Part shown: positions 2,297 through 21,100 of the stretch, one piece after another
Layout: each line of letters opens with the position of its first letter
Position numbering within the stretch: the stretch's first letter is position 1
The notes under the pieces: model-generated
Databases searched by the model: none
What the model was told of the DNA's origin: nothing
What the model saw: the letters and a program-made list of their open reading frames with translations, nothing else
Position numbers and translations under genes: made by a program
Source: Lepidodermella squamata
Taxonomy: Eukaryota; Animalia; Gastrotricha
NCBI GenBank assembly: GCA_047495785.1
Contig: JBLDXI010000021.1
Location: forward strand, 682,001-746,000
Direction of reading: 5' to 3'
DNA length: 64,000 bases

Positions 2297-3127
2297 ATGG
2301 CGCCCACGGAACTTCGAGATTTCAGCTTTGAGCAGAAGACTGGAGTTGGTGGCAAGCGGACAAATGAAGACATTGTTGCTATGCTATACCAGCTTCGTGA
2401 TGTGATGGTCTCGGTTTTCGACAAACTCGAGAAGAAAATTGACGACGCGATTGGTGCTGATGGCTCTATCAAAGCTGAGTTGAGCGATCAGGAGAAGATG
2501 TTTTCCGAGCGCATCGATTCGCTCGCGAAACAAGTGAAAGAAGCGAAACCGGAAACCTTTGCCGAGGCGGTTAGTAAGGTTAGCAAACTGGAGAAGAAAG
2601 TCGTGAAGCTTGAAGTCAAGGTTGTGAAGAAGGAAGAGAAAGCTGAAGCTGACCTCTACGCCGGAGCAGTGGTGTTGAACGGTGTTAAGGAGGGCGAGGC
2701 GGACACTCTGATCAACGCTGTGAAAACAGCGGTGCCGCGACTGCAGGGTGTCTTCTTTCGTGCCCGTCGGCTGGGTCTCAAGAAAGACAACAGCAACCGC
2801 CCGATACTGGTGGTCCCTGTCAACAGCGCGATCACCAATGAAAATTTGGAGGACATGACGAAAGAACTGCCGAACGGCGTTAGGATGCGCCGCTTTGTGC
2901 CGGCGAACCTTATGGAGGCTGAGAAAGCTCTCGTTCAAGAGGGCAAGCGAAGAAACCCAAATAAAGTGGAGGGCACCAGCTATTTCCAGGTCCGCAGCAT
3001 GAGGTTGCGAGTGGTCAACGACCAAGGCATTGCGCGACTGCGTTATGACCCGACTACGAAGAAGGTTGTCGACAGTGACGAGGATGCGACCGTCTTTGAT
3101 GGTCACTTCCGCCCACGTCGCCTATGA
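2297..3127 (+). CDS. LINE ORF1p (coiled coil plus RRM-like nucleic acid-binding protein)
   Basis: 276 aa. A heptad K/E-rich coiled coil followed by VVLNGVKE...RARRLG...RPILV, typical of CR1/L2/RTEX-type ORF1 RRM domains. Confidence 0.85.
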   Translation: MAPTELRDFSFEQKTGVGGKRTNEDIVAMLYQLRDVMVSVFDKLEKKIDDAIGADGSIKAELSDQEKMFSERIDSLAKQVKEAKPETFAEAVSKVSKLEKKVVKLEVKVVKKEEKAEADLYAGAVVLNGVKEGEADTLINAVKTAVPRLQGVFFRARRLGLKKDNSNRPILVVPVNSAITNENLEDMTKELPNGVRMRRFVPANLMEAEKALVQEGKRRNPNKVEGTSYFQVRSMRLRVVNDQGIARLRYDPTTKKVVDSDEDATVFDGHFRPRRL

Positions 3128-6100
3128 CGGGGGGAGAGGGAAAACAAAGAAGAAGAAAGGTGGCGAGTGCGGTGTGCCAACATCCAAGGCTACTGCACTG
3201 AGAAGTTGGGAGTAATGACTAAAATGGTGAAGGACAGCAGCATGTGTGGCTTCATGGAAACCTGGAAGTATGAAGATGTGTTACCAGATATTGAAGGTTA
3301 CGAAAAGTTTGCATCTCCTGGAAAACGCGTGGGCCGGGGTAGGCTATCTGGCGGCAATGTGGTATACGTAAAGAAGAATCTCGCAGAAAGATGTCGGGTC
3401 GTATGGGAAACAGCATATGCATTGGCATTATCGATCACATCAGTTAGAGGCAAAGTTCTGTGTGGATGGCTGTATCGCCACGAAGACTCCACTTGCTGGG
3501 AGGAATTCAACGATAAAATGCGAGAATTAAGTGGCAACCACGACTCCGTGCTGCTCCTTGGTGACTTTAACAGCCGTCTCGGTGAGGAGAAAGACGCCCC
3601 CGAAGAAATTTGTGAAACGCTACCCAAAAGAGTAAGTGATGACAATGTGAGAAATGGCCACTCGGTAGCTGAATTTGTCGAGTTTGTTAACTGCTATAAT
3701 TTGATTGTTTTGAACGGAAGAGTCACACCTGAAAAGAGCCGCTCTGTCACCCGTCCGGCAAGTAATTCGGTTGTTGACTATGCCTTGGTAGATCTCGACA
3801 GCTTCGAACTGATTGAAGAAATGGCGGTGGAGCGTTCAAGTATCTCTGATCACAGCTCGCTGGTGGTGACAATCACTTTCGAGAGCCCGGTCCTTGATCG
3901 AATTCACATTGATGATCAGCTATTCAAGCTGGAGGTTCAGGATTTGGCAAAAAGGTTAACGGCTAATGAGTCTGTTGCAACGATGTCAGAAAAGCTCGTA
4001 TCAGTGGCAGAAAAGTCGCGGAAACTTAACTGGAAATGGCGAAAACCGAAAGCTACGGCTGCTAATGTCGCTCCTCGCTCGAGTAAATTGGCGCGTTTGT
4101 CTGATGAAGCTAGGTTGAAATGCTTAGTCGAAAAGCCCAACAAGGTCTGGGAGCTGAAGCGTAAGGAAGGAAGACAGCAAATGCCGCCGGTAGAAGTTTT
4201 TCGTTGTCACCTGATGAAAGCACTAGGAGGTGGAAAACCATATGCCGAAGAGAAACCGACTGCTACCCGTGAGAAAGTGACTGTTACTGCAGTGAAGCGA
4301 ATTGCTATCGACGACGGTGTCCCCACCAAATTGATCAAACTGGATGCTCTAAGTGCTTGGTCCAACCCATTCATGAATGCGATGAAGCCCAGCGAGAGTT
4401 CGGTGAAATTACCCGATGGTCGTGTGATTCGAAGGGAAATGATTCTAGATCCGATTTCGGTTGATGAAGTGAAAGCTGCGATTGAGAGATGTGCTAGCGT
4501 ATCTGCGTCTGGCCTTGATGGTATTGGATATCAACATATCCGAGCTAACATTGACGTTATGGCTCCGATGCTGAGCAAGATCTACACTGGTATTTTGAAC
4601 GGGCAACCGTACCCGAAAGCGTGGAAAACCGCCTTGATAGTACCGGTCTTCAAACAGGGAGACTCGAATGACCCGAACAACTACCGACCGATATCACTGC
4701 AACCTTGCATTGCAAAAGTTTTCTCGAAAATTTTGGATGTTCGGTTGAGAGAATGGCTCAGTCTGTTTTCGAAATTGCAAAAGTGCCAATTTGGATTCCA
4801 GGAAGGCTGCTCAACATTAGACGCGGCAATGGTCCTGCACGCTGCTATGGCCTACTGGCGCGAGCGTCATCCACGTGTATATGCAACTTTTGTCGACTTT
4901 TCCTCGGCGTTCGACAAGATCAACCGCAACCTTTTGTTCAAGAAGCTCGAACGACGTGGCGTGCCGCTTCAATTCGTTGCCATGCTACGTGACATGTATG
5001 ATGACACAAAGGCGGCGGTATCGGTGGGCGATGAGATCTCGGCTACCTTCGATGTTCACGATGGGGTGAAGCAGGGCGACCCTCTGTCGCCGCTGTTGTT
5101 TTGCGTCTATATTGACGACCTGGAAGAAGCGCTGGAAATGCCAGGCGTAGCTGGTTTGCCTCTCGGCATCAAGAGCGTGAGGTGTATTCTGTTCGCAGAC
5201 GATGTGGTCATACTGTCGGCCCATCGACACGAAATGGAGGGCTATTTGTATCGACTGCTTAAGTACGAAAAAGACAACTGGTTGACAGTCAACAGACGGA
5301 AAACGAAGTACGTCATTTTCGGCGAACAAGAAGCTGAACCGAAACCGCTGTTCTTTGGCGACGTCGAGCTGGAAAAGGTCAGTATTTTTAAATACTTGGG
5401 TGTTTGGTTCTCCGAGGATCTTTCCTTCAAAGAGGCTATCCGCCAAAGTAGACTGAAGCTGCTGAGGCTTACCGGGCTCTTGCCAAGCTTATTTGAAAAA
5501 TTTAACGAGTTGCCGATTGCAAGTCTCAGACTACTGTATAAGGGGGTCGTTCTGGCGGCTGGACTTTACGGCGCGGAGTTATGGGGCCTGGATAGGCAAT
5601 CAGCTATTCCGCCCTTGCATTGTAGGGTGATCAAGAGAGCTTACCGACTGCCTACATGTACCAGCCAAAGGTTGCTGGAGAGAGAGCTCTGGTTGCCTGA
5701 CGCGAATACGGAGAGAAAAAACTGCGCGATTAGATTTTATTTTCGAATGAAGACGTCGAGTGACGATAGTCTGTTGCAAGCAGCATACCTGACACAGCTG
5801 ATGTCAATGTCACGAAAAATGTACAACAAGGTACATAGGGCGGAGTTGGAGTTAGGAAACATCGGACTGAACGGCCTGACGAAACCTGGTACTAACGCGG
5901 CCGCCGCGAAGGCTGTTGTCAGAAACATGTACACGGCAATCGCAAGAAAGGAGAACGAAGAGGACAAAGGCTCACGGTTGTGGTCGATTAACCCTGTATC
6001 GCGTGAGGCTTCTTACGCCGAACGGTATTTGAAAGATTTGGGCCCGAAATTAGGCAGAACGCTATTATGCATAAGAACTGACTCGACTTTTGGCGTAAGT

Positions 6101-6334
6101 GTTTATGTGAACCAGCGGAGGGAGGAGAAGGTCATCTGCAAATGGTGTGGTGCTCAAGGCATCGAGCCTTCGAATTGGCTGCTGCTTCAACACTTGATGT
6201 GCGAGTGCCCCAGAAATGAGACGAAATGCGCGAAAGCAGATTTGGACCGGCTACTGTTCGGTCGAGCAAGCATGTACACAGGGCCCGCTACCTTGGAGAA
6301 AATCAATATTGCCTACGAGAAGTATTGCAGATAA
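3128..6334 (+). CDS. LINE ORF2p: APE endonuclease, reverse transcriptase and CCHC finger
   Basis: APE motifs ANIQG, METW, GDFNSR, VVDY, SDH. RT motifs NYRPISL, QFGF, FVDFSSAFD, GVKQGDPLSPLLF, LFADD, FKYLG. Finger CKWC...HLMCEC. The frame is open from directly after the ORF1 TGA. Confidence 0.95.
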   Translation, partial: RGERENKEEERWRVRCANIQGYCTEKLGVMTKMVKDSSMCGFMETWKYEDVLPDIEGYEKFASPGKRVGRGRLSGGNVVYVKKNLAERCRVVWETAYALALSITSVRGKVLCGWLYRHEDSTCWEEFNDKMRELSGNHDSVLLLGDFNSRLGEEKDAPEEICETLPKRVSDDNVRNGHSVAEFVEFVNCYNLIVLNGRVTPEKSRSVTRPASNSVVDYALVDLDSFELIEEMAVERSSISDHSSLVVTITFESPVLDRIHIDDQLFKLEVQDLAKRLTANESVATMSEKLVSVAEKSRKLNWKWRKPKATAANVAPRSSKLARLSDEARLKCLVEKPNKVWELKRKEGRQQMPPVEVFRCHLMKALGGGKPYAEEKPTATREKVTVTAVKRIAIDDGVPTKLIKLDALSAWSNPFMNAMKPSESSVKLPDGRVIRREMILDPISVDEVKAAIERCASVSASGLDGIGYQHIRANIDVMAPMLSKIYTGILNGQPYPKAWKTALIVPVFKQGDSNDPNNYRPISLQPCIAKVFSKILDVRLREWLSLFSKLQKCQFGFQEGCSTLDAAMVLHAAMAYWRERHPRVYATFVDFSSAFDKINRNLLFKKLERRGVPLQFVAMLRDMYDDTKAAVSVGDEISATFDVHDGVKQGDPLSPLLFCVYIDDLEEALEMPGVAGLPLGIKSVRCILFADDVVILSAHRHEMEGYLYRLLKYEKDNWLTVNRRKTKYVIFGEQEAEPKPLFFGDVELEKVSIFKYLGVWFSEDLSFKEAIRQSRLKLLRLTGLLPSLFEKFNELPIASLRLLYKGVVLAAGLYGAELWGLDRQSAIPPLHCRVIKRAYRLPTCTSQRLLERELWLPDANTERKNCAIRFYFRMKTSSDDSLLQAAYLTQLMSMSRKMYNKVHRAELELGNIGLNGLTKPGTNAAAAKAVVRNMYTAIARKENEEDKGSRLWSINPVSREASYAERYLKDLGPKLGRTLLCIRTDSTFGVSVYVNQRREEKVICKWCGAQGIEPSNWLLLQHLMCECPRNETKCAKADLDRLLFGRASMYTGPATLEKINIAYEKYCR

Positions 6335-6692: not shown

Positions 6693-8394
6693 ATGGCCAT
6701 CCAACTTGCAGCAACAAGTGGCGCTGTATCATCCCCAGCTGACAAGGAATCTTCCAAGAAATATCTGTTTGCTGCTGAAATCCCGCATCTATTTGAGGTA
6801 AATTCTTAATTGAAAAATAATTCACTTAGTTATTTGTCGAATTTAGTGTCTCATGAGCGGGTTAATTCATCACCAACCCGTCAATCATTTGTCATTTCTG
6901 CGTAATTGTTTGGCAGCCGTGAAGCAATCCGGGGGCGTTGACTCTTTGCGCTGGGATTCTTTTATCGAGACCAATCAAGCGGAGCAGAGTGTCGTCTTAC
7001 CTAGCTCCAATCATGGCAGTCGATTACCATCTGCTAAAGTGAAGAACCACGAACCCACCGCTAAAACATCCGCTGCGACCCAATCGGACTTGTCGCCGTT
7101 ATCTAAGCGTTTAGTTGATCCAGGAAGAAAATCTGATTTATCGCAGACAGCAGCTATCGTTTTGGTTTACGGTACAGTTCACCAATACACCACAGTATAC
7201 AACTTATTTCGCTCATGCTTTTAGTTGGCCCGATTTCAACAAAGGGAAGCTTTAAGCTGCCCGGAGTGCCCAATGATGCTGAGGTCATCGAAGCATTTAC
7301 ATCTGGATTTCATGACTTGGACGACATGGAGGATGAACAGCTTCGAGAGCAAATATTGTCCAAGCTTTATTCACACGCCGGCAATGCTCCTGTTGTCCTT
7401 GTAAACTACCCAAGAAATGCTAATCAATTGCAATGGCTTCTAAATCGTGTTGGCGGCATCTCGGCGGCAGCATTTGTAGATTACACAGAGGAAGTTTTCA
7501 AAAACAGACTTGCTTTATCCACCGAAAGAGCGCTCACGACTCCATCTGCTATCAGCAGCAAAATTGAATCATACAAACAAGCAACGCTGCCTGTCATTCA
7601 TTGGCTTGATAGGAACGGAAAGCTGACAGTTGTGAGTCCGATTTAGTTGAACTTTAGCTTCAATTACGCTGAATCACGTCTTAGGTTGACGGTAGAGGTG
7701 ATACTGAAATTCACGATCAGCTGGCGAAGTTCTTCGATGACCGATTGAAGTACCGCGCTCGTTTGACTTCTATGATGGGAAAAGCAGAGCAAAATCTGGC
7801 TATTGACATTACCCCTATCACAGATCCTTATCCCAAGTCAGCTGCGGTGAATTCATCTTTATACCTTCTCTTTGGTATGAAGTATTCGCAAGATATAATT
7901 AGTCGCTTAACTATATAAGTTTTTATATAGTTGGACCAGTGCCGAATTTCAATGTCTTCAAAATGTTCCTTGCTGGAAAGACGCACCATTTGCTACAGCC
8001 ACCTCATGATCTGAAGGAAATTACTAAAGTAGTGGCCTCAAATGACGGCCCGTCTGTTTGCTTGAATTTTCCATCGAACCGTGCCGAGTTCGACTGGTTC
8101 CTCAAAAATGTTGGCTTCAGCATTGCGGGTGTTATTGTCATCGATCAGTCTGAAATTACTGCTCGAACTCGCCTTGCATCAGCCCACCTCAATGCCACTG
8201 AAATAGAAGATTCCATTGGAAATTACAAGAAACACGTTATCCCCATAATTCACTGGTTCGATCGTGCGGGAAAAGTCAAATTGGTATTCTTGACATACAA
8301 GCTATCACCATGTTATAGCGTTGTTTTTTTTCAGGTTGATGGTGAAGCTGACGATTCAGTAGTTATGAAAAACGTTGTCACTCACATTAAATGA
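6693..8394 (+). CDS. AK5-like paralog: N-terminal dimerisation/docking (D/D) domain plus two degenerate adenylate-kinase-like domains (multi-exon)
   Basis: KKYLFAAEIPHLFE|CLMSGLIHHQPVNHLSFLRNCL...GGVDSLRWDSFI matches the AK5 N-terminus. The AK-like parts keep NYPR/NFPS and YKQATLPVIHWL but lack the GGPGSGKGT P-loop. GT-AG introns, e.g. 6798-6846. Confidence 0.75.
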
Positions 8395-8745: not shown

Positions 8746-11700
8746 ATGACAGCAACACATGACAGCGTCAAAGACTACCTATATTCTAAGGATGTACCGC
8801 GAATGTTCGAATGTCTACTCGGATCGTTGATGCATCACAAGCCCGAGAATCCTATAAGCTTCGTTCGAGATTGTCTTCTACAAATAAAAGCAAACGGCGG
8901 CCTTGACGCACTGAAATGGAACACATTTATCGACAGAGCACCTCCACCAGCGACTGCCGATCAAATAGCGACGCTCAAATCGAAATGGCGCCCACTGATG
9001 AGTCAACGACCTCTTCCAGCCATAGCACCGCCACCTCAGCCGGTTAAAGCCGTTCCCCGGCCGCTGATTTGCTTAATCGGCGCCGATCGAGCTCTTTTGG
9101 CTGGTGCATCGTCTCTTCTTATGAAGCAGTATGACTTTGTTTTCAGAAATATGGGACAAGAGCCGTTGGTGAATGACGTACGTTTTTGGAGGGTGAAACT
9201 TTCTTCAATAGAATAATCACTCTATTGGCAGATAACTTCGAGCACTGAAACCATCGGCAATTGGGTAAATCTAGTTAACAAACAAGGCAGCACCTGCTCA
9301 GGCTTTCTAGTTACCGGTTACCCTCCTACAAAATCTCATTTAGATGCATTTCTGCGAAAGGTAACGGTGGCTTAATCTGATGAAGTTGAATGGATAATAA
9401 AATCATTTTTTTTAGAAAATTATGGCCTACCATTTGCTTCTGATTATTCATTTAAAAACATCGGCCCCAGTGACTCCTTCCATTACAGCTTGCATTGAGC
9501 GAGCGCGATCGTCTTCCAAAGGCTTGAATGTCGTCGAGGTGAGTAATTATCACCATCCTGAGAGCCTTCATTATTTGTTTCGATTTTATTTTTACAGTTC
9601 GAGGTTGAATCTGCGGAGGATGGATGCAATGAGGCCATTGGCGCCATTGTCGAGAAGTACCACCTTCACCCCTCACCCAGCCGTTTGGCTAGGGCTGGTA
9701 CCGGTCTAACTTCTGCGGGTGGCGAGGGCGTTTTAGCTTTCAAAGGCGAGAACATGAAAGCCGAAGCGGCTAGGAAGCCTGATTTGAACCCAGCTGTGCC
9801 TCTCGTGATGCTTTACGTCGGGCCCGAATCGAAAGACTATCTAGCTCACATTTCAAAGCTTCCAAATATCCAGTGTTTTGCTCAGGAACCGGCCGATACC
9901 GATGAAAAAGCTCACCAGCAACTGTTAGCCTCGCTGATTATGGCTGGTAAAGATTCAGGTGTTGTATGCATAAATTTCCCGCGCAGTGAGCACCAGCTTA
10001 ATTGGCTGCTAACTCGCGTCGGCGGCCTGACAAGTGCCGCCCTTGTCGACTATACGGAAGAAGCGATGGAGGATCGACTACTCGCGGCTAAGGCAAATAC
10101 TGCTGCGATTCAGTACTACAAGGAACAAACAATTCCGACAATTCACTGGCTTGACAGAAATGGAAAGCTTAAGCTTATCGTAAGTAAATTATTTTTGAGA
10201 ATTTTCCTAATTTCAAAACTTAAATTTTAGTGCCAAATCGCGAAGCCTGACGATGAAGTTGATGCCTTCAAGCAAGTGGAAGAATTTATAATCTCAGAAG
10301 TATTTTATCAGGTATGTTTACACTACCCATGCCAAATTTTGCATAATTGATTGTGATTTTTGTTGATTTGTTTTTGCGTCTCGATTACCAATACTTCTAT
10401 AAGCATCGTTTTATACAGCGTAATAATCGCCCAGTTTTTATCCCGGTATTCATGTGACTTGCCCAGTGTTTGCCCGGTGGGATTCCGGTGTTGACGATTT
10501 ACGCAAACTACTACATACTGTTGTTTTATCGGATTTTTACAAGCCCAACTAGTGGCTTCTAAAATCATGTATTGACTAGGTAGTAATTTGCACTCGCATA
10601 GATCAGTTGCTTTAAGCACTTCATTTTAATTTTGGCCGTAGAACATATCCGCTTTAAAAATCGTCGGTGTGTAGGTAAAGGTATTGCATTATATGCGAAT
10701 GAAAAAAATAAAATTGACAGCCTGATGCTGCCATGCGCGTTTATCTATCATCGTTATAGTAGTAGGTAATACCTCGCCGCCTTAATGTTTTATATTAATA
10801 AAACCACTCGTTCTCGAGCCTTCCGCCGATGGTCTCCATTTCTTTGCATCTGAAGAAGAAGCCAGCATTTTTATACCATCAAGTACCTTGCTACGATGAT
10901 GCAGAGCAGCGGCGCGTCTTAAGCAGCAGCAGCGAGCCGAGTTTGCTCTTCGCTTTTTTTTTCCACTGACGTTGTTCGGCAATGTTCTGCACACGTGGCA
11001 TGTGTACTTTTCCATTTTTTTCATCTTACATTCTGCATCACCGGCCAGCCCCCGGCATACATCTACTCATCGACTCTAACAAATAATAATAATGGTAGCG
11101 CAAAAGAGAGATATAACATTTCTGAGGTGTTGGCGCTCATTAGACGGGGCCGCCTTAATCATTTTTTCTAGAATATCCGCTAAACCGCCCATTTTTTCAC
11201 GCATGTTTTTTTGCGACTGGTGGAGCGAAATGCTCGTTTTTTTGTGCGCATATCGCATCTTCCTTCGCTACAATTTTCTGGCCGAAATAAGTAACTGCTC
11301 GACTGGTTTTGTACATCTGCTCCGACTGCATCAGTTTTCTTATTAAACATATATCGTTAATTATTACCATTACATCTTCTAGACACACTTGCTGTTGTTG
11401 TTTTTCTACACAACATTTTGAAAAGTCTTGCAACTTTTCTTCATAAAGGTGAGTCGGTAATTTAATAAAATGCATATTTAATACTAAATTTCCGTTACAT
11501 TCATCGCCAACAGCTGGCGTGTCTGGCTGAATTCAGCCTATATCATTCTAGAATCAGGTGTTGAAATGCCTTATGCGTTTAATACCTATTATTATTTATA
11601 TATATATATAAGAAGCAATGTTTTGATAAGGATATTATTAGTTTGAAAATATATATACCCCATATCTCGCCGGTTTTTATGGCACAGGTTCTCCGATATC

Positions 11701-14700
11701 TTTATACGAACCCGCCGTAGTACATATAATTCAATCCAGATTTCATCGTTTGTTACGATGCTTGTATATATATACCCTGACTCTTCTAGCGTTGAAAAAA
11801 TGAGCTTTTGAATACGGCTACCTGTTAATTTTATCTCCTCGATAGCGACACTGCGTGTACCCGGAAAAAAAATGGGCAACAAATTAAACAAATTGGTAAG
11901 CGTTTTGACTAATTAGTACTACTGCCTAGGTTAGGCTACCGTGCGTTGGTTGCTCGTAATTCTAATTCAGCATTATTACAAGGCAAATTACGCGAATCCG
12001 AATAAGTGGAGAGATGCTGCGTGAGATTTGCTTGACTTGCATTTTTTCCGTGCTGTAATAGCAGCGGATGAAAACAAAGATTTTTGGCCGAGATATTCAG
12101 CTGCCGCTTGAGATGTATGCCTAGCTATAAGGCAGATTATGATAATAGTATAATAAGGCGGCTTGAGGACCGATGCCTCAATACGTCTGTCACACATATA
12201 CGTGCCGGCGTGTTGTGTGTTTGGGGCTCGATCTTGCGATATGCCTCGTTAGTAATTGCTGCGACGGACCTTTTATACCTACATAGTAGTCCTCGCCTCA
12301 CTCAACCATCGTTTTTCCTCATGCAAAAATCTAGGCTATGGTTTATACATACCTATCTACCTACCTGCATCTGCTGCTGCTGCTGCTGCTGAGCAATGAT
12401 TTCAGTAAATAATGTCTTGTTGCTGATATTATCAGCCGAGCGAGACTCGCTACATTGCTGCAACAAACAATAATAAATAAATCGGCGTCTTTCGTTATGG
12501 CCTGTTCTCTCGTTCTAAAATCACGTGTATTGTTATTATTTTTCGGACACTATAGCCCTCCTAACTGCTATATAATATAATTTGCATAAAAAGCTGTTAA
12601 ATTCATCGCCTGACGCGCGGGCTCGATTTTATACCTGCGCGTGTCACATAACGTCGCCGTTTATCACGCTGCAACGCGATTTATTCCTTATACGAGAAAG
12701 TCATCATCCATGCTTGGGTGAAAAAATAATCTAAGCGCGATTATGTTTAATAACTGCCTGCCTTGCTGCCCGCTGCGCCCGAAACGCCGCTCATCGGCCG
12801 TCGGCCCCGTCCTGCCCGATCAGCAGCAGTCGGGCATGGGCGACGGGCCGTCGAGTGGTTCAGCCTCTCGAAACTCCTCAAGCCGGGTTAGTTTCTATTC
12901 GATTTTTTTTCCTCGTAAATTTGTCATATCATATTTCCTCAGGCGCGAAGACACGTCTTTTTAGCATTATTTTTTGTGAAATGCTATCACCATTATTATA
13001 ACTGAGAAAGCGCAGCGTAAACTGTTAAATGAGATTAACTAGCTTAGCGAGAATGCGCTTAAAGTAATATTAATATTAAAATATATTTTTCAGGGCAAGA
13101 AGGCTCCATCCTCTGCTGCTGTTGCTCCTGCTCCTGCTGCTGAAACGAACGAAACAGAAAACATGTCGATCCGTAAGTTTCTCTTTATTTCTAAATTAAT
13201 TATAAAGGATAAACGGAAAAATCAATTAATAATATTAGGCGGTAGGATGAAGCGCTGAGAGCGGTTTGTGTACCATAAATATTTACCTTTTCATTTTGCT
13301 CTGACAAAGTGTAGTGGCGCGATACATTTTACGTTTTCATTGTTTCAGTTCCGCTATGTAGCGCGCATTATTCTATATTAGGTATATTACTTTCAACTGA
13401 GTCCAAGGTCCAATTTAGTTTTATTAGCCTGCACACCTGCTGAGCGACATATTTTTACACGCTTGACCGAGCATTATTTGTGTTGTTTATATTTCGAGCT
13501 GCGATAAGAAAAACCAAGCTACTCGAATTTTTTGTTGTTCTTGACTTATTGATTTTTCGCTCGCGTGTGATCAAAATAATAAAACTAAAAATTTATTTTA
13601 ATTTCCTGTTTGGACTAAATTTTGTTAGACTGCTGCATTTATTTGTTTTGAAACGACTAAATGCTGATTTCGCAACTAAAACGCCTGTTTCTTCAAACTT
13701 GGCGTGTTTTTTACGACAATTTTACCTGGTTACTAACATATTTTCTTCCTCGAAAATCCCTTATAGAGCCGCAAACCCCGGCGGCTGTGGTTGCTGCTGT
13801 GGAACCTGAGCCTGAGCCATCAGCGCCGGCTGAGACTAACGTCCACGTCCATGTTGAACAGCCAACACCGCCGCCTAGCCGCGAAACCTCACCGCAAGCC
13901 ATCGAAGAGCCGAAAAAAGCTGAGGAGAGCCCAGCTGCGGATGACTCAGCCGCAGTTGAAACCGTGGCAGCTGTCACGGTGGGGGCTGTGATTCTCGCGG
14001 CTTCTCTCGAGGCTGAAAAGCAGGAAAACGACGAAGTGCTCAATTCCGTAGAAGAATCTCATACTAATTCCAATTCAACGCCGGTTATTGTATTGCAAGA
14101 GCCTGTTGTCGTGGCTGAGACGGATAAAACGGTGACAGGCGACGTAGATCAGCCGAATCCTGAGTACTCAGCCGTGCTGGACGCGACTCAGGCCGAGGAA
14201 CAGGCTGCTGAACAGATTTTGCAAGAAGTTATTACGGATGCTCACGTCGAGGCTGCGTCGGCTGAGGAAGAAGCTGCTGAGATAATAGTCGACCAACTCG
14301 TCACCGAGGCTCATCAGGAGGAAGAAATTGCGGTTGTTGAGGAGGTCACGCAAGAGGAGGTTATCCAACCGCAAGTCACCGAGTCTGAAACTGGTCATAG
14401 CGACAATCCAAACCCGGAATATTCCGCGATATTAGATGCAAGCCCCGAGGAAGCGATGGCTGAAGTTGTACTGGAGCAAATCGAGTCGGAGGCGAAAGCT
14501 GAAATGGTGTCGAATATTGAAGAAATCGCCTCGACACCCGCGGCTGAAAATGCTCATGATGGCAGCCATTATCATGACACGCATGGTTTGTTCAACTTTA
14601 AATTTTAACCGACCCCTTTTTAACCATAATAATGACATTCGTTGCAATAATTTTGGGATCAGAAAGCTGAAAAATGATTGCTGAATCAGGCTAATTCATA

Positions 14701-17700
14701 TTTTTTTAATTTAAAATTTAAAATTAAAATAAAATAATAAAAAATAATGAAATTTAAAATTTAATTTGATTTTTTTCAAATTTTGTAATTTTTTCAATTA
14801 GAGAAATTCCGAGAAATAAATATATTTTTCTGATTTATATGTATGTCCGTTTTTTGGCTATTTTCTCAGTATATTGCGACGAATGCTTTCATAGCGGTCA
14901 TTTTCCCCACGTGAATGCCTTGGGCTTACTGGGCCAAAAACATTGTCCAGGCCTGCTCCGTTGCATTATCGTGAAAACAATAACAAAATAACACATTCTT
15001 TTTACTAGAGCATGCGAGTTATCTTACTTTATTTTGCCAAGTCTGATTCATCATTCACGGCGACATTCTTGCTATAGCCTGATTCAATTTGCGCGCGTAT
15101 TGATTTCTCTGACCGTAATTTGCGGCCCAGACTTTTTTTTATGAAACGGACAAAAGCTGTCGTAGTCATTTAAATTTTGTGACATGGTTTGCTTATTTTT
15201 TCTTGAAACTCTAGAAAAACTCAAGGATACCAAGGTCATCTTCGTCCTTGGTGGCCCTGGAAGTGGCAAGGGAACTCAATGCGCGAAGTTGGTCGAACGG
15301 TACGGTTTCGCCCATTTATCGACCGGCGATCTACTCCGAGCTGAGGTCGCCTCTGGCTCGCCTCGCGGCAAGAAACTCGAGGCAGCTATGGCTGCTGGCG
15401 AATTAGTCACCCTCGACACTGTTCTTGAACTTCTCCGAGATGCCATGCTTCACGCCGTAGATAAAGGCCCAGCCCCTGGCTTTTTGGTCGACGGATTCCC
15501 CCGTGAACTCGACCAGGCGTTGAGGTTCGAGAAGGAAATTCGCGCGCCGGACGCTGTCCTATTTTTCGACCTGAGCGAGGCAACCATGCGTGCCCGTTTG
15601 CTGAAGCGAGGCGAGACATCAGGCCGCGTCGATGACAACGAAGAAACCATCGTGAAGCGGTTCAAGACCTTCGAACAGCACAGCAAGCCTGTTGTTGAAC
15701 ACTACGGACCCTCTAAAAAGCTGCACAAGTTCGTCGCCGAAGGTTCGCCGGACGAAATTTTCAGCCAAGTCACCGCAATCGTCGACCCGTTGATGGGCCG
15801 GCAGGGTACGGAATAAACGTTTATTATATTGTTAACAAAACCCTCTGATACCCTGTGCTAAATATCTATAATAATAATAATGAATAATATATCAATTGTT
15901 ACTGACATTTGTTTTATTGACGAAAAGCTAGAGAATTTTATCGCTTGCGCATGATTTTGAAATAAAGAATGTTCAAGTTTTGGCGTGTCCATTGTTCTAT
16001 TTTTCATCCTCAGTAATAACCTCCCAGGCAATCCTACTACCTTCCAACGAATCTGCTGCAAAACTTCCGAAGAACTAATGACAGTGAAAAGCTTTGTTTT
16101 CACTAATCCAACGTAAAAAACACAAATTTTGAAGCAGTTTCGCATATTACAGGCGTGGATAAGCTGAAAAAGACCAAGGTGATTTTTGTTCTCGGTGGCC
16201 CTGGAAGCGGTAAAGGAACGCAATGTGCCAAGCTTGTCGAACGCTACAAATTTGCCCATTTATCAACCGGAGATCTGCTGCGGGCGGAGGTTGCTTCAGG
16301 ATCGCCTCGAGGCAAAAAGCTCGAGGCAGCTATGGCAGCCGGTGAACTAGTCACCCTGGATACGGTGCTCGAGCTCCTCCGAGACGCCATGCTGAATGCC
16401 GTGAATAAGGGCCCAGCGCCGGGTTTCCTCATCGACGGTTTCCCGCGTGAGTTGGATCAAGCTATTAGGTTCGAGAAGGAAATTCGCGCGCCTGATGCTG
16501 TCCTATTTTTCGACCTCAGCGAGTCCACTATGCGCGCGCGTCTCTTGAAGCGCGGCGAGACATCAGGCCGCGTCGATGACAACGAGGAGACTATCATCAA
16601 GCGATTCAAGACCTTCTCCCTCCACAGCCGCCCTGTTGCTGATCACTACGTGCCGTCGAAGAAGCTTCACAAATTCGCAGCTGAAGGCACACCTGATGAC
16701 ATTTTCAAAAGCGTCGCCGCTGTCATCGATCCTCTGATGGGAAAACAAAGTAAGATTTATGTCCTGATCCAGGTCGTTATGCTGCTCTTCATTAAAACGA
16801 ACCAGTATATCGATTTTCATTTCCGTCCTTTTATGCATGTGCCTGAAATACAAAAGCTGAGAAGCCGCTTTCACACATTTTTTTTATTTGCTATTTGACC
16901 GGCCTATTTGTCCCCGGCCAATGCGAACTCTGGCGTAGTATGTATATGGTTTCGGAGGGATAAAAATCGCGTTATCGCAAAATATTGCCGGCTATGCTCA
17001 TCGTTTCAACGCGTGATAAAATGAATAGCCATGTTTATGTACATATGCGATTGCGAAATATCGACAGCGCGAATACCCAAGCGCAGCGTATAGCTATAAA
17101 ATAATGCTAAAAAAATTGCCAGGCCAGACGCTGCCTAAGCGATGTATGTTTTATGTGGAGACTTCGCGTGTGTATAGAAAATCGAACTCGCAATTTTTTT
17201 AGCTCGCGCGCTCAGACTGCTTTTCGCCATTTTGCTTCGCGTAATGTCTTCATTCTTTTACAGCTCGATAATCATTATAAATTCTCTATAATATTACAGA
17301 TAGAATCAAGTATACAAAAATATACTTGCACATTATTTTATACGCGCTCACGCCCATGAATTCGCTTTAGCCGGTCAATATACTTATGGAATAAGAATTT
17401 GGAAAAACAATATAAGCAACCTCATTTCGCCCAAACTGCATTTGAGAAATCACTAATCTTATTAAAGCCGATTAACGATGACTTCAGGTAGATATATCAT
17501 TGCCAAGAATCAGGAAATTATGGTATTTTTAACTGAATTTCTGTTTTTCAGATGAAGAGAAGCTCAAGAGCACCAAGGTAATTTTCGTCCTTGGTGGCCC
17601 TGGCAGTGGCAAGGGAACTCAATGCGCGAAGTTGGTCGAACGCTACGGTTTCGCCCATTTATCGACCGGCGATCTACTCCGAGCTGAGGTCGCCTCTGGC

Positions 17701-18150
17701 TCGCCTCGCGGCAAGAAACTCGAGGCAGCTATGGCTGCTGGCGAATTAGTCACCCTCGACACAGTTCTGGAACTTCTACGCGACGCCATGCTCCATGCTT
17801 TGAATAAGGGCCCAGCGCCTGGATTCCTAGTCGACGGATTCCCCCGTGAGCTCGACCAGGCGTTGAGGTTCGAGAAGGAAATTCGCGCGCCGGACGCTGT
17901 CCTATTTTTCGACCTGAGCGAGGCAACCATGCGTGCCCGTTTGCTGAAGCGTGGCGAGACATCAGGCCGTGTCGATGACAACGAAGAAACTATCGTGAAG
18001 CGGTTCAAGACCTTCGAACAGCACAGTAAACCCGTTGTTGCGCACTACGGCCCCTCGAAGAAGCTGCACAAATTTGTGGCTGAAGGAAGCCCGGACGAGA
18101 TTTTCAAGAATGTCGCCGCCGTAGTCGACCCTCTTATGGGCAAAAAATAA
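8746..18150 (+). CDS. AK5: AK5-like multidomain adenylate kinase locus (longest inferred isoform: D/D, degenerate AK domains, linker exon, three catalytic AK domains)
   Basis: KDYLYSKDVPRMFECLLGSLMHHKPENPISFVRDCL...LKWNTFI (AK5 D/D). The last 5' exon ends CAG|GTATGT at 10311 (phase 0), compatible with exon 13094-13172, followed by phase-1 AK exons at 15215, 16153 and 17552. The connectivity is inferred from phase. Confidence 0.7.
11872..11895 (+). CDS. Candidate alternative first micro-exon MGNKLNKL (N-myristoylation-type start)
   Basis: aaaATGGGCAACAAATTAAACAAATTG|GTAAGC: strong donor, phase 0, compatible with exon 13094. Confidence 0.55.
12743..12886 (+). CDS. Candidate alternative first exon MFNNCLPCCPLRPKRR... 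(Cys cluster plus basic patch)
   Basis: 48 codons ending AGC CGG|GTTAGT, phase 0, compatible with exon 13094. Confidence 0.6.
13094..13172 (+). CDS. Shared linker exon GKKAPSSAAVAPAPAAETNETENMSI
   Basis: tttttcag acceptor and C|GTAAGT donor. 79 nt, phase 0 in and phase 1 out, matching the phase-1 AK exons. Confidence 0.7.
13661..14585 (+). CDS. Candidate alternative first exon: aromatic/hydrophobic N-terminus plus a long acidic region with repeated NPEY motifs and amphipathic helices
   Basis: 308 codons plus 1 nt ending CAT G|GTTTGT (phase 1), which gives ...HDTHEKLKDTK when joined to AK exon 15215. Confidence 0.65.
15215..15816 (+). CDS. Adenylate kinase catalytic exon 1 (AK1/AK5-type, short LID)
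   Basis: VIFVLGGPGSGKGTQC, HLSTGDLLR, DGFPR, RGETSGRVDD. Possible phase-1 donor after 15805, or read-through to TAA at 15816 overlapping AATAAA. Confidence 0.95.
16153..16749 (+). CDS. Adenylate kinase catalytic exon 2
   Basis: Same motifs. Acceptor ttacag|GC GTG GAT and donor CAA A|GTAAGA, both phase 1. Confidence 0.95.
17478..18150 (+). CDS. Adenylate kinase catalytic exon 3 (17552-18150), with its own candidate micro first exon 17478-17487 giving a stand-alone AK1-like enzyme (MTSDEEKLKSTK...)
   Basis: ATG ACT TCA G|GTAGAT...tttttcag|AT GAA GAG. All AK motifs are intact. TAA at 18150. Confidence 0.9.
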
Positions 18151-21100
18151 TTTGATGAAAGCTGCCTCTACGAAAAATCAACATCATCATCTGTTCATTC
18201 AACATCAGCACGGTGAATCGTGTAAATAAATTTTAATTACACACCTTCCTGCCAATGACCAGCCTCATAGAGAAGTCTTTAATCACGCTACATTTTACGC
18301 TATCTTTCGAAATCTGTGTGCACCTTTCTGTCACATCTTTTCGTATTAGCTCGCCCTTCATGTTATACCTAATCGCATGGCATACTGCTGCATTTGTTAT
18401 TATAACAATAATTCTTAGCTATAAGAATTAGTTGGAGAGTAGCGGATTCAAGTTGAATGCCTATCGCAAAAATGAGATAATCAACACGTGAGTTTGGTGC
18501 CTGGAGTGAGTATGGAAAACTTCAAAGAGCCCGTTTTTTGTTTTTCTATTCATTTTTACTTCAACTGATTCGCCTAGGCTGTTAGCGCGGAGATTTTTGT
18601 TACTCATTGTTTCCCTGTATGTGATCTTATTGTATAAAAATTATATTTATTTCATTCGTCTAATGACCGACCAAAGAATGAACATCGATGAATAACGAAA
18701 AACAACAATAAAAGAGCCAACAGTTTGCGACTTGCGACTTGTGTTTATACTTATCACGGCTTTTTAATGGGAATCTCATTCATTGAAATGAATATGCGAA
18801 AATGACCTGTTTATGAATTTCGAGAGGAAATAATTTTGCAAATGACCTCGATGGTGACTATTCATTAGGCCCCTTTCAAGTGACGGGGTTTGCTACTTGA
18901 AAATTGTGTTTCTATTTTCCGCAGCTGTCATCATGTATGTAGGCTCTGATTGACGTATCGCCTGTTGCGATGGCTTTTCGTTAACGATAAATCGACCGCT
19001 CGCCTGGGCGTGTTTGTTTACTCATTGTTTACTTTAATTTTTAAAAGGCGTGGTTGTTGCCTGCCGGTGGTGGGCATTGTTGTTGAATTTCTAGTGAATA
19101 TTCAATTGCAACAACCAGCGAATCGATTGTTGTGTTTCGCGCTTGTGGCCTTTTGGCGGCGCTGCGTGCGGCAGCGATGAGGCCATCGCGCACTCGAGAC
19201 ATTATTGCGCGCACACCTTTCCGTGCGCTGACCTCTTGCGGGCATATCGCAACAACAACAAAAAGCCCATCTTCCAACCTGAGCGCGTCGTAATTCTTCG
19301 CAACATGCCTCGAACACGAACGAGCTTTTGAAAAGCGAAACGGTCGCGACTTCCACGATTCCTTACCGCACGACACTCGAGTTTATCTGTGTCTCGAACC
19401 CAACAAAAGACCTCGTCGTGCGTACATATTTATCAACTCAGGCGAGTGACATTTTACAGCGCTGATGAATCTTTCAGAAAAAAGCGCGTAGTACACTTTC
19501 GCCACGGTGCAATATCCTGGCTTGTTTTTGCGGGTTTGTTTGTTGTTTGCGCGGGGGGCGACTAGTAGCAACAGCAGGCGGCGCTAGCTAGGTACCTCTA
19601 CCATGTGTTATTACAACGCGTCACACGATGCGTGTAATAAATAACAAGAGACACCTGAAAATCCGTGTTTTTGTTTATGCGCGCCCTTTTGCGCGTTAAT
19701 TACGCTGTACTATATGTGATTTAGCCACTCTTTATCACAACAAATCTACTCGGCTAAATATAGCCCGCAGCCAAGTTGCTTAGTTGATGCTGATGATTAT
19801 AGCATTTGTTGTACCTACGAGTTGATGCACCAAAACGTAACACACACCGCGCAGGTTTTTCCACGACAAATTACCAACGATAATAGCCTTGTCAGTTGCG
19901 CCCTCTTGCGGCCGGTTATAATCCGCAACCGCGCGGCTCGCGATGCAAAACGGCGGCACGTCGCCCATATTCACCGCAAACATCATGGCCCAAGCTGCAT
20001 AGACCAGCCACCATGGGCTCTAACGGATCCGAGAAGCCCGCCCGCCGTGTGTATGTTTGCCCACTCGGCTAACATGATCAACAACGTTATTAATTTATAA
20101 ATATCGCCCACTTCGCGACTGTATAATAGGAAACCCTTCATCTACCACTCTTTCGCTTTGCTTTTCACAATGCCGTATCGTAGCTTTTGGCATCGGAAAA
20201 ATTACGCTACCGATCATACAATGCTATATTTATCCGGCTTATTTTTCAGATTTTCCACCGCAAGCGATAGTTTACGCCATATTCAATAATGAATAAATTG
20301 TTTATCGTCGGATACTCGACACCTTTGAGGAAGTTTGGCACCCTTTTTCTCCGCGTCTCTTTCACAGTTAGAAAGTGAATAGAAGTTTTCACAGGAATTT
20401 AGCCTATTGTTTGTAACATCGCGCGCGAGCTCATTGTTCGGCTTAGTAATCGGCGTTCTGTTCAATGAAAAAAGCGCGCAGCCACTTCCGTCGCGTAGAT
20501 GTCGCCTGTTGATATATGCGCCATTTAGAAGAAACGTGGCTGCGGATGGCATCAAGAGTGCCGATTTTAATTCTTCAGCAGCAACAACATAATTTTATAA
20601 CACTTGAGGATGCGAATTTGTTTTGACAACAATACTGCGATTAATTAAATAGTAGTGATTTTTCACCCGTTTTGCCGCGGCTTTAAGGTCAAACGCTGCC
20701 GCTGCGTGAACGTGCCCCGACGACCGCTGTGGGCTTGAAAACGTGCCGAAAGCACCTAGATATGTATATATGAGCGCCGTCGTCGAACGGCTGTCATCAC
20801 AAACTTAGATAGCTGGCTGCCCACCGCTAAAATGCGACTACATTCAGAAATGCCGCGCGCTAATTTCGAGTTAAGTATCGCCTATGTATTGTCAAGCGGC
20901 GGCGCGCGCGTATCTAGACTAGAATTCACACCTTGACTGTTACACGCGTTATTTTCACAACACCGACGATGACAACGCCCAATAAATCTTCATTTCATAC
21001 GCTTATCAAAGCGATGAACTCAATTCGAGACATTTCAACTTCAGCATTCAGTCGGCCCTAAAACTTACAGCTGCATTTATTCGAATTTTCAGCTTCCATT

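Follow-up and report, generated by a model that had tools for sequence, protein, structure and literature searches.

An optional exon with candidate AKAP-type docking helices in an AK1-type adenylate kinase gene of Lepidodermella squamata

Introduction

Can an adenylate kinase itself carry the docking helices of AKAPs (A-kinase anchoring proteins)? The question is raised by a stretch of 64,000 nucleotides from the gastrotrich Lepidodermella squamata (GenBank assembly GCA_047495785.1, contig JBLDXI010000021.1, positions 682,001 to 746,000 of the forward strand; hereafter the window), in which an AK1-type adenylate kinase gene holds a very acidic coding segment with repeated amphipathic helices and Asn-Pro-x-Tyr (NPxY) motifs. 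An earlier annotation made from the letters alone (the sequence-only reading) had proposed that this segment belongs to a membrane-type isoform and could dock either PKA or the docking/dimerization domains (D/D domains) of adenylate kinases encoded next to it. Here, we find that the segment is an alternatively included, in-frame cassette exon of the AK1-type gene, at window positions 13767-14585. The reading we favour, to which we give a probability of roughly 0.4, is that the cassette would be a docking module of the AKAP or D/D-interactor type on a membrane-bound adenylate kinase.

The helix of an AKAP is amphipathic, 14-18 residues long and hydrophobic at positions 2, 5, 6, 9, 10, 13, 14 and 17 (PMC12083921). 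Amphipathic helices also dock dimers of the RIIa or DPY-30 fold other than those of PKA, including nucleotide kinases that bear such domains (PMC12203939, PMC3494852).

Results and Discussion

Gene model and splicing

Contigs from three public runs (X1, X2 and X3) were aligned over window positions 13000-18400. X1 and X3 were treated as cDNA-like on the grounds of their SMART-type adapter ends and GT..AG joints; X2 was contiguous DNA with no joints. The exons of the AK1-type gene were analysed singly and not as a joined protein. The splice joints on either side of the cassette, 13172>13767 and 14585>15215 (both GT..AG), were read in X1 and X3, the second with 255 letters on the shorter side in X3. 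A further GT..AG joint, 13172>15215, skips the cassette; it was found in a single X1 contig with a 29-letter anchor and is hence somewhat weaker. None of the three joints occurs in the DNA run X2. The gene thus has four parts, namely two leader exons, the optional exon and the catalytic exon, which are listed here together with a reading frame extension upstream of the cassette.

11872-11895, + strand: coding part of exon 1, MGNKLNKL, a start of the N-myristoylation type; the donor after it is GTAAGC
13094-13172, + strand: exon 2 (79 nucleotides, phase 1), GKKAPSS...NMSI, a basic patch after the myristoylation signal
13661-13766, + strand: extension of the open reading frame upstream of the acceptor, 35 open codons from an ATG, MLISQLKRLF...TWLLT..., in frame with the cassette
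13767-14585, + strand: cassette exon (819 nucleotides, 273 codons, phase 1 at both ends), very acidic and holding all of the motifs
15215-15816, + strand: AK1-type catalytic exon, with its acceptor at 15215, an intact GGPGSGKGT P-loop and a stop codon at its end

The first exon was placed by cDNA contigs of X1 and X3 whose loose ends before 13093 read ...ATGGGCAACAAATTAAACAAATT, a string with a sole occurrence in the window at 11872-11894. The catalytic exon matches Pfam ADK at 1.3e-45, and one X3 contig continues beyond its stop as far as 15903.

The exon with the motifs is expressed, as the earlier annotation required: the GT..AG joints in the cDNA-like contigs make it a real spliced coding exon. 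Its boundaries had been set differently, from the ATG at 13661 to the stop at 14608 of a + strand frame of 308 residues (51 Glu and 14 Asp vs 11 Lys and Arg). The transcripts seen use the acceptor at 13766/13767 instead, and the read joints place the exon end at 14585. With the acceptor at 13767, the ATG at 13661 was rejected as the start codon and is at most a minor alternative. The extension at 13661-13766 also contains a branch-point-like TACTAAC and a pyrimidine tract. It is kept as protein in the relative described below (BLASTP E=2e-6, 12 of 24 residues identical), with several synonymous differences and diverged DNA, while its RNA support is weak (X1 only, at low depth). It may be an alternative, aromatic-rich and amphipathic N-terminus encoded by a first exon with an internal promoter.

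Membrane anchor

The leader begins with MGNKLNKLGKK, which conforms to the pattern for N-myristoylation, G-{EDRKHPFYW}-x-x-[STAGCN]-{P}, and basic residues come next. Leader exons 1 and 2 are thus predicted to encode a myristoylation-plus-basic membrane anchor of the kind found in AK1-beta, the known vertebrate precedent for a myristoylated membrane isoform of AK1 (PMC2680645). Because of this first exon, the isoform is plausibly membrane-bound; the membrane-type label given earlier is tenable on that basis, and not on the open reading frame start from which it had been derived. In AK1-beta, an alternative 5' exon supplies an ordinary AK1 domain with a myristoylation signal and so directs the enzyme to the plasma membrane (PMC2680645). 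Here, likewise, a short-type ADK domain, intact in its P-loop, is spliced to a myristoylation-type leader, with or without the cassette. Unlike in AK1-beta, which has only a short leader, a 273-residue cassette with conserved motifs can be spliced between anchor and enzyme.

Conservation of the cassette

The AK exon has a relative in the ENA metagenomes (P0004, 80% identical), whose contig (L013, 14 kb) is syntenic with the locus. Between an upstream AK5-like exon and the AK exon, this contig holds a 384-codon open reading frame, the cassette orthologue, with 42% identity overall (alignment A1). The orthologous exon (L013:8076-9095, 1020 nucleotides) is also a multiple of three in length; codon and phase at its acceptor are those of the cassette, and so is the donor, G|GTTTGT. 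No clear counterpart of the myristoylation exon was seen on L013, the sole candidate being ATGGGAAATATATTG followed by GTAGGT at L013:6284.

Conservation within the cassette is patchy: blocks are kept at 80-100% identity and the linkers between them are unalignable, while the AK domain is only 80% identical. Five blocks are kept: TPPPSRE, a hydrophobic segment with the pattern V-E-x-VAA-x-TVGAVILAAS, the D-x-PNP-x-YSA-x-LDAT units, helix 2 and, more loosely, helix 3. The features of the cassette are as follows.

13865-13885, + strand: TPPPSRE block, invariant in both species amid unalignable linker
13955-14005, + strand: hydrophobic segment VETVAAVTVGAVILAAS, 15 of 17 residues identical in the relative, within a predicted helix at cassette residues 60-99
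14147-14185, + strand: NPxY unit 1 DQPNPEYSAVLDA, an NPEY 13-mer at the N-terminal end of a long predicted helix
14207-14242, + strand: helix 1 AEQILQEVITDA, matching the RII-binding consensus at every position; a gap in the relative
14261-14314, + strand: helix 2, 18-mer AEEEAAEIIVDQLVTEAH, 14 of 18 residues identical in the relative, predicted local distance difference test (pLDDT) 87-93, passing the strict rule given below
14276-14311, + strand: 12-residue consensus match of helix 2 AEIIVDQLVTEA, full match
14402-14440, + strand: NPxY unit 2 DNPNPEYSAILDA, an NPEY 13-mer near-identical to unit 1
14459-14494, + strand: helix 3 AEVVLEQIESEA, departing from the consensus at a single position, with Glu at position 9 of the 12-mer

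Translation of the frame confirmed the two NPEY 13-mers and the three related helices where they had first been placed, and it confirmed that helices 1 and 2 match the 12-residue AKAP consensus quoted by the sequence-only reading at all positions. The expected conservation of the helices was borne out in part: the one relative found keeps the NPxY units as well as helices 2 and 3, and helix 1 is absent there. Helix 2 reads AEEEAAEIIVDQLVTEAH here and AEEEAAEIILDQVINEAA in the relative, with the shared form EEEAAEII.DQ...EA. Helix 3 keeps its hydrophobic face in the relative, where the aligned helix AADTIVDEVIVEA is a full consensus match. The D-x-PNP-x-YSA-x-LDAT unit occurs in two copies here and in three in the relative, and the x of its NPxY is E, A or G (NPEY here; NPAY and NPGY in the relative). 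Of the 10 variants between the runs within the cassette exon, 8 are synonymous and the two others conservative (T>M and I>V), a spectrum that fits purifying selection.

No relative other than the L013 exon was found. With the exon as query (window:13769-14584), a full HMMER search of 1.84 billion representatives returned no homologue and a protein Atlas search was blank, while PDB sequences gave only chance matches (best E=1.2). Word searches with the open reading frame and with the two-species alignment found no cassette homologue, and a scan of JGI metagenomes by protein patterns found no cassette relative. A degenerate DNA pattern for TVGAVILAAS gave only 17 chance matches (GC 51-73%, mostly bacterial-looking). 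No paralogue of the exon was found in the 121-Mb genome, no sequence homology of the cassette to named AKAPs was found, Pfam placed no domain on the exon above threshold, and single helices searched against Pfam returned nothing. These blanks say little, because the L013 orthologue, which came via synteny, was missed by all of these homology searches; for acidic exons of low complexity, a blank search is no evidence that relatives are lacking. For the AK domain, the best named matches are from molluscs and flatworms, at about 60-65% identity.

The hydrophobic segment

The Ala/Val/Gly-rich segment at window 13955-14005 (VAAVTVGAVILAAS) is nearly identical in the relative. It is a candidate for either a marginal transmembrane helix or a buried one. 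Were it a true transmembrane helix, the docking helices and the AK domain would lie in the lumen or outside the cell, and the product would be an ecto-adenylate kinase that meets neither PKA nor a D/D protein. We regard this as the least probable of the readings considered. The identity of 15 of its 17 residues in the relative and a mean Kyte-Doolittle hydropathy of about 1.9 over 19 residues (hand calculation) are in its favour, and the same ten-residue string was met, unverified, in apparent bacterial cytochrome oxidase subunit I sequences among the chance matches mentioned above. However, the segment is rich in Ala, Val, Thr and Gly and contains a Glu; insertion on the biological (Hessa) scale comes to about +2.7 kcal/mol (hand calculation), which is unfavourable, and a myristoylation-type N-terminus together with a cytosolic-type AK1 domain lacking a signal peptide favours the cytosol.

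The NPxY units

Helices and NPxY motifs are parts of one repeated module, which consists of D-x-PNP-x-YSA-x-LDAT followed by an amphipathic helix of the form AA-x-x-(I/V)(I/L/V)-x-x-(V/L)(I/V)-x-x-A. In an alignment-free AlphaFold2 prediction, helices span cassette residues 60-99, 131-197 (pLDDT 75-93) and 226-255. Both NPEY motifs fall exactly at the N-termini of predicted helices, the helix of unit 1 beginning at the Pro after the Asn, so part of the NPEY conservation may reflect helix capping.

The sequence-only reading had pointed out that NPxY motifs bind PTB and FERM domains. As in the NPxY tails of receptors (LDL receptor, integrin beta, APP), the Asn-Pro-x-Tyr core is present in every repeat of both species. 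Unlike those tails, the cassette units have no hydrophobic or aromatic residue at position -5, which is Gln or Asn in all five NPxY units of the two species; the protein is not a receptor tail, and the units sit at a predicted helix N-terminus. As classical PTB/FERM ligands they therefore do not qualify. Since conservation spans 14 residues (D.PNP.YSA.LDAT), the NPxY unit is a longer, undescribed motif.

This composite organization opens an alternative, in our view nearly as probable as the docking of D/D dimers, in which the cassette is indeed a docking or linker module, but its helices and PNPxYSAxLDAT units bind partners other than D/D domains and the resemblance to AKAPs is convergent. Candidates would be adaptors of the phosphotyrosine or PTB type, receptors of the cytoskeletal or LD-motif type, the membrane and the AK domain itself. 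Conservation is highest in the 14-residue NPxY unit, and not in the helix. Every repeat of a helix comes with an NPxY unit, as though the two made up a single composite module. The absence of the -5 hydrophobic residue of classical PTB ligands, and the possibility that the units are partly helix caps, count against such partners. Further points on both sides come from the helices themselves.

The AKAP-type pattern against chance

Helices 1 and 2 have hydrophobic residues at seven of the eight interface positions of an AKAP helix and helix 3 at six, in a region predicted to be helical at pLDDT 75-93. Over the whole exon, the loose 12-residue consensus gave 4 overlapping matches vs a mean of 1.58 in residue shuffles (P=0.09), and on its own it is weak evidence here; the helical half of the exon alone gave P=0.013 in shuffles, and the exon of the relative 5 matches vs 0.56 expected (P=0.001). 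A strict 18-residue rule was built from the interface positions in PMC12083921 and demands hydrophobic residues at 5, 6, 9, 10, 13, 14 and 17 with no Pro or Gly. The exon and its orthologue each contain 2 matches to it, which exceeds shuffles at P=0.006 and P=0.0001, respectively. Anchoring-disruptor peptides (sequences from PMC4526808) were also slid ungapped along the exon. Ht31 finds its best match of the exon in helix 2, where it shares 9 of 22 residues in canonical register (P=0.007; P=0.035 in the relative), and RIAD likewise picks helix 2 (P=0.017 here, P=0.002 in the relative). Helix 2 is thus the best candidate for a docking helix. The F/Y-A at positions 1-2 that marks RI-selective, type I helices (PMC12083921) is replaced by A-E in helices 1 and 2 and in the helices of the relative. 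Taken together, the tests indicate a conserved amphipathic helix of AKAP shape, for which binding itself is a prediction.

The same figures bear on the reading that the exon is a fast-evolving acidic spacer, whose matches arise by chance in a helix rich in Ala, Glu, Val and Ile and whose conserved blocks reflect limited divergence time. The non-significant result of the loose consensus on the whole exon would fit, as would the loss of helix 1 in the relative and the finding of homologues in one relative only. We nevertheless hold a mere spacer to be quite improbable: blocks of 80-100% identity amid unalignable linkers stand beside an AK domain that is only 80% identical, the strict pattern exceeds shuffles in both species, the variants are mostly synonymous, and in both species the exon has a length divisible by three.

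Several observations weigh against docking of D/D dimers by the cassette helices. Interface position 2 is Glu in every helix. The consensus is degenerate, and average residue frequencies suggest, as a rough estimate, that even the strict rule would be satisfied by a few per cent of all proteins. As internal repeats, the three helices do not count as independent matches. The Pfam family RII_binding_1 (PF10522) stays sub-threshold (11.6 bits, E=0.38, cut-off 18.8), with its match on helix 1 only, a perfect consensus match here that falls in an alignment gap in the relative. In helix 2, the polar face is kept as well as the hydrophobic one, which could indicate a different partner. The conservation as a whole rests on one relative.

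The conserved polar face, the Pfam score below threshold and the lack of a significant PDB match are further points for partners outside the D/D class. Against such partners stand the hydrophobic period of four and the Ala and beta-branched make-up of the helices, which are typical of AKAP helices, and the disruptor peptides, which align best to helix 2 and in register.

Candidate partners

For docking of the AKAP type, the genome offers several partners. It encodes an RI-type PKA subunit with cNMP-binding domains (L004) and the first exon of an RII-type subunit (L003), both with D/D domains, as well as three other RIIa-domain matches and six DPY-30-domain matches. A complex predicted from two copies of the RII D/D (L003:1480-1602) and helices 1-2 (window:14180-14329) scored 0.45 vs 0.37 for a control with an unrelated protein, which speaks neither for nor against binding. 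Two more D/D domains lie upstream of the AK1-type gene within the window.

8746-8910, + strand: D/D domain encoded by an adjacent, apparently separate AK5-like gene, matching the PKA-RI D/D of the genome at BLASTP E=3e-9
6693-6960: second neighbouring D/D domain, upstream of the AK1-type gene

Both domains had been recognized by the sequence-only reading, and they are real: the match of the 8746 domain to the RI D/D assigns it to the PKA-R-type D/D sequences, a helix-turn-helix class related to the N-termini of RI and RII, with a putative dimer, and AK5 is listed in the PKA-R D/D superfamily (PMC8339350). Pfam Dpy-30 came up sub-threshold at E=0.18 for the 8746 domain. The same annotation had described the D/D-bearing products as isoforms of one gene with the cassette. 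They appear instead to belong to separate AK5-like genes, because the D/D exons lie upstream of the AK1-type gene's own first exon and the AK-like reading frames after them have divergent P-loops, GPISTKGS and GADRALLAG instead of GGPGSGKGT. With such P-loops, these AK5-like genes may be pseudo-kinases. They stand in tandem at 6693-8394 and 8746-10230, each with an RI-like D/D domain and then AK-like domains, and an AK5-like gene upstream of the AK1 gene is also present in the relative (L013:4541-5131).

On this arrangement rested the earlier proposal that the AK5-like proteins, encoded only kilobases upstream, offer their D/D domains to the helices, which would yield a self-assembling adenylate kinase complex from one locus. 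That the D/D domains are genuine and of RI-like type is in keeping with it, as is the adjacency of the AK5-like and AK1 genes in the relative, and D/D-bearing kinases docked on amphipathic helices are known from radial spokes (PMC3494852). However, adjacency would also be expected from tandem duplication, and the neighbouring genes have divergent P-loops and are apparently separate. We judge this special case improbable.

Proposed mechanism

According to the docking reading, inclusion of the cassette would make a scaffold of a membrane-bound kinase, and the conserved islands would be short docking motifs. Like AKAPs and other D/D interactors, helix 2 and probably also helix 3 would dock onto a D/D dimer at its X-type four-helix bundle; they resemble the helices of such proteins in shape, composition and register. 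A regulatory subunit of PKA would be the likeliest partner, since the genome encodes both RI and RII; we put this assignment forward tentatively and hold it to be doubtful in its own right. Another protein of the RIIa or DPY-30 fold, or the adjacent AK5-like D/D proteins, would be less likely. Local interconversion of ATP, ADP and AMP would then be placed beside cAMP signalling at the membrane, and splicing would decide whether the kinase carries the scaffold. The full proposal, in which a membrane-anchored adenylate kinase is itself an A-kinase anchoring protein whose optional-exon helices recruit PKA or the adjacent AK5-like D/D pseudo-kinases, is likewise on the unlikely side.

Comparison with known systems

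Lipid-anchored AKAPs include AKAP18/AKAP7 alpha, smAKAP, AKAP12/gravin and Drosophila AKAP200, and adenylate kinases with D/D domains (AK5, AK7 and AK8) are docked by helices on other proteins. Like the former, the cassette isoform combines a predicted N-terminal anchor, of the myristoylation type, with acidic, largely disordered sequence, and like AKAPs in general it has one or more amphipathic helices of 14-18 residues, hydrophobic at 5, 6, 9, 10, 13, 14 and 17 (PMC12083921). Unlike in AKAPs, the putative scaffold is fused here to a catalytic adenylate kinase and encoded by an optional exon, and position 2 of the helix is acidic; unlike type I anchors, the cassette helices lack the FA motif. 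The tandem helices on one scaffold recall RSP3. Most of the known D/D systems outside PKA are axonemal or nuclear structural assemblies, in which the kinase bears the D/D domain and the scaffold the helix, whereas here it is the kinase that bears the helix.

Lipid-anchored acidic AKAPs, a myristoylated AK1-beta and D/D-bearing adenylate kinases docked by the helices of others are thus already known separately. Our literature searches found no adenylate kinase that itself carries AKAP-type helices. Membership of the AKAP class is defined by direct binding to a D/D domain of a PKA R subunit, which Ht31-type peptides compete away and a proline that breaks the helix abolishes, and the cassette kinase is a candidate for it. 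An AKAP further needs a determinant of its own that targets it to a site in the cell, for which the leader is the candidate here. If the proposal is true, an adenylate kinase that carries its docking helices itself, lipid-anchored and under splice control, would be the reverse arrangement of AK5, AK7 and AK8. A single polypeptide would link cAMP signalling to the local buffering of adenine nucleotides and the production of AMP, with splicing as an on/off switch, and would unite metabolic and cAMP signalling compactly within one protein.

Other observations at the locus

Downstream of the AK1-type gene, the cDNA-like contigs contain a GT..AG joint 16749>17552 that joins AK copies two (16155-16749) and three (17552-18150) in frame (...PLMGKQ-N-EEKLKSTKVIFVLGG...), so that these copies form one transcript for a two-domain adenylate kinase. 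A loose contig end after 17487 also continues into 17552, and 17357-17487 may therefore be another alternative exon upstream. A non-LTR retrotransposon with an ORF1 of 276 codons and an ORF2 of 1055 codons lies at window 2297-6334, just upstream of the AK cluster. In an AK1-type protein of another organism (P0064, 64% identical, from a Logan assembly), the N-terminus is extended by a His-rich stretch that contains a calmodulin-binding IQ motif (Pfam PF00612); it seems that AK1 enzymes acquire different N-terminal docking modules across invertebrates.

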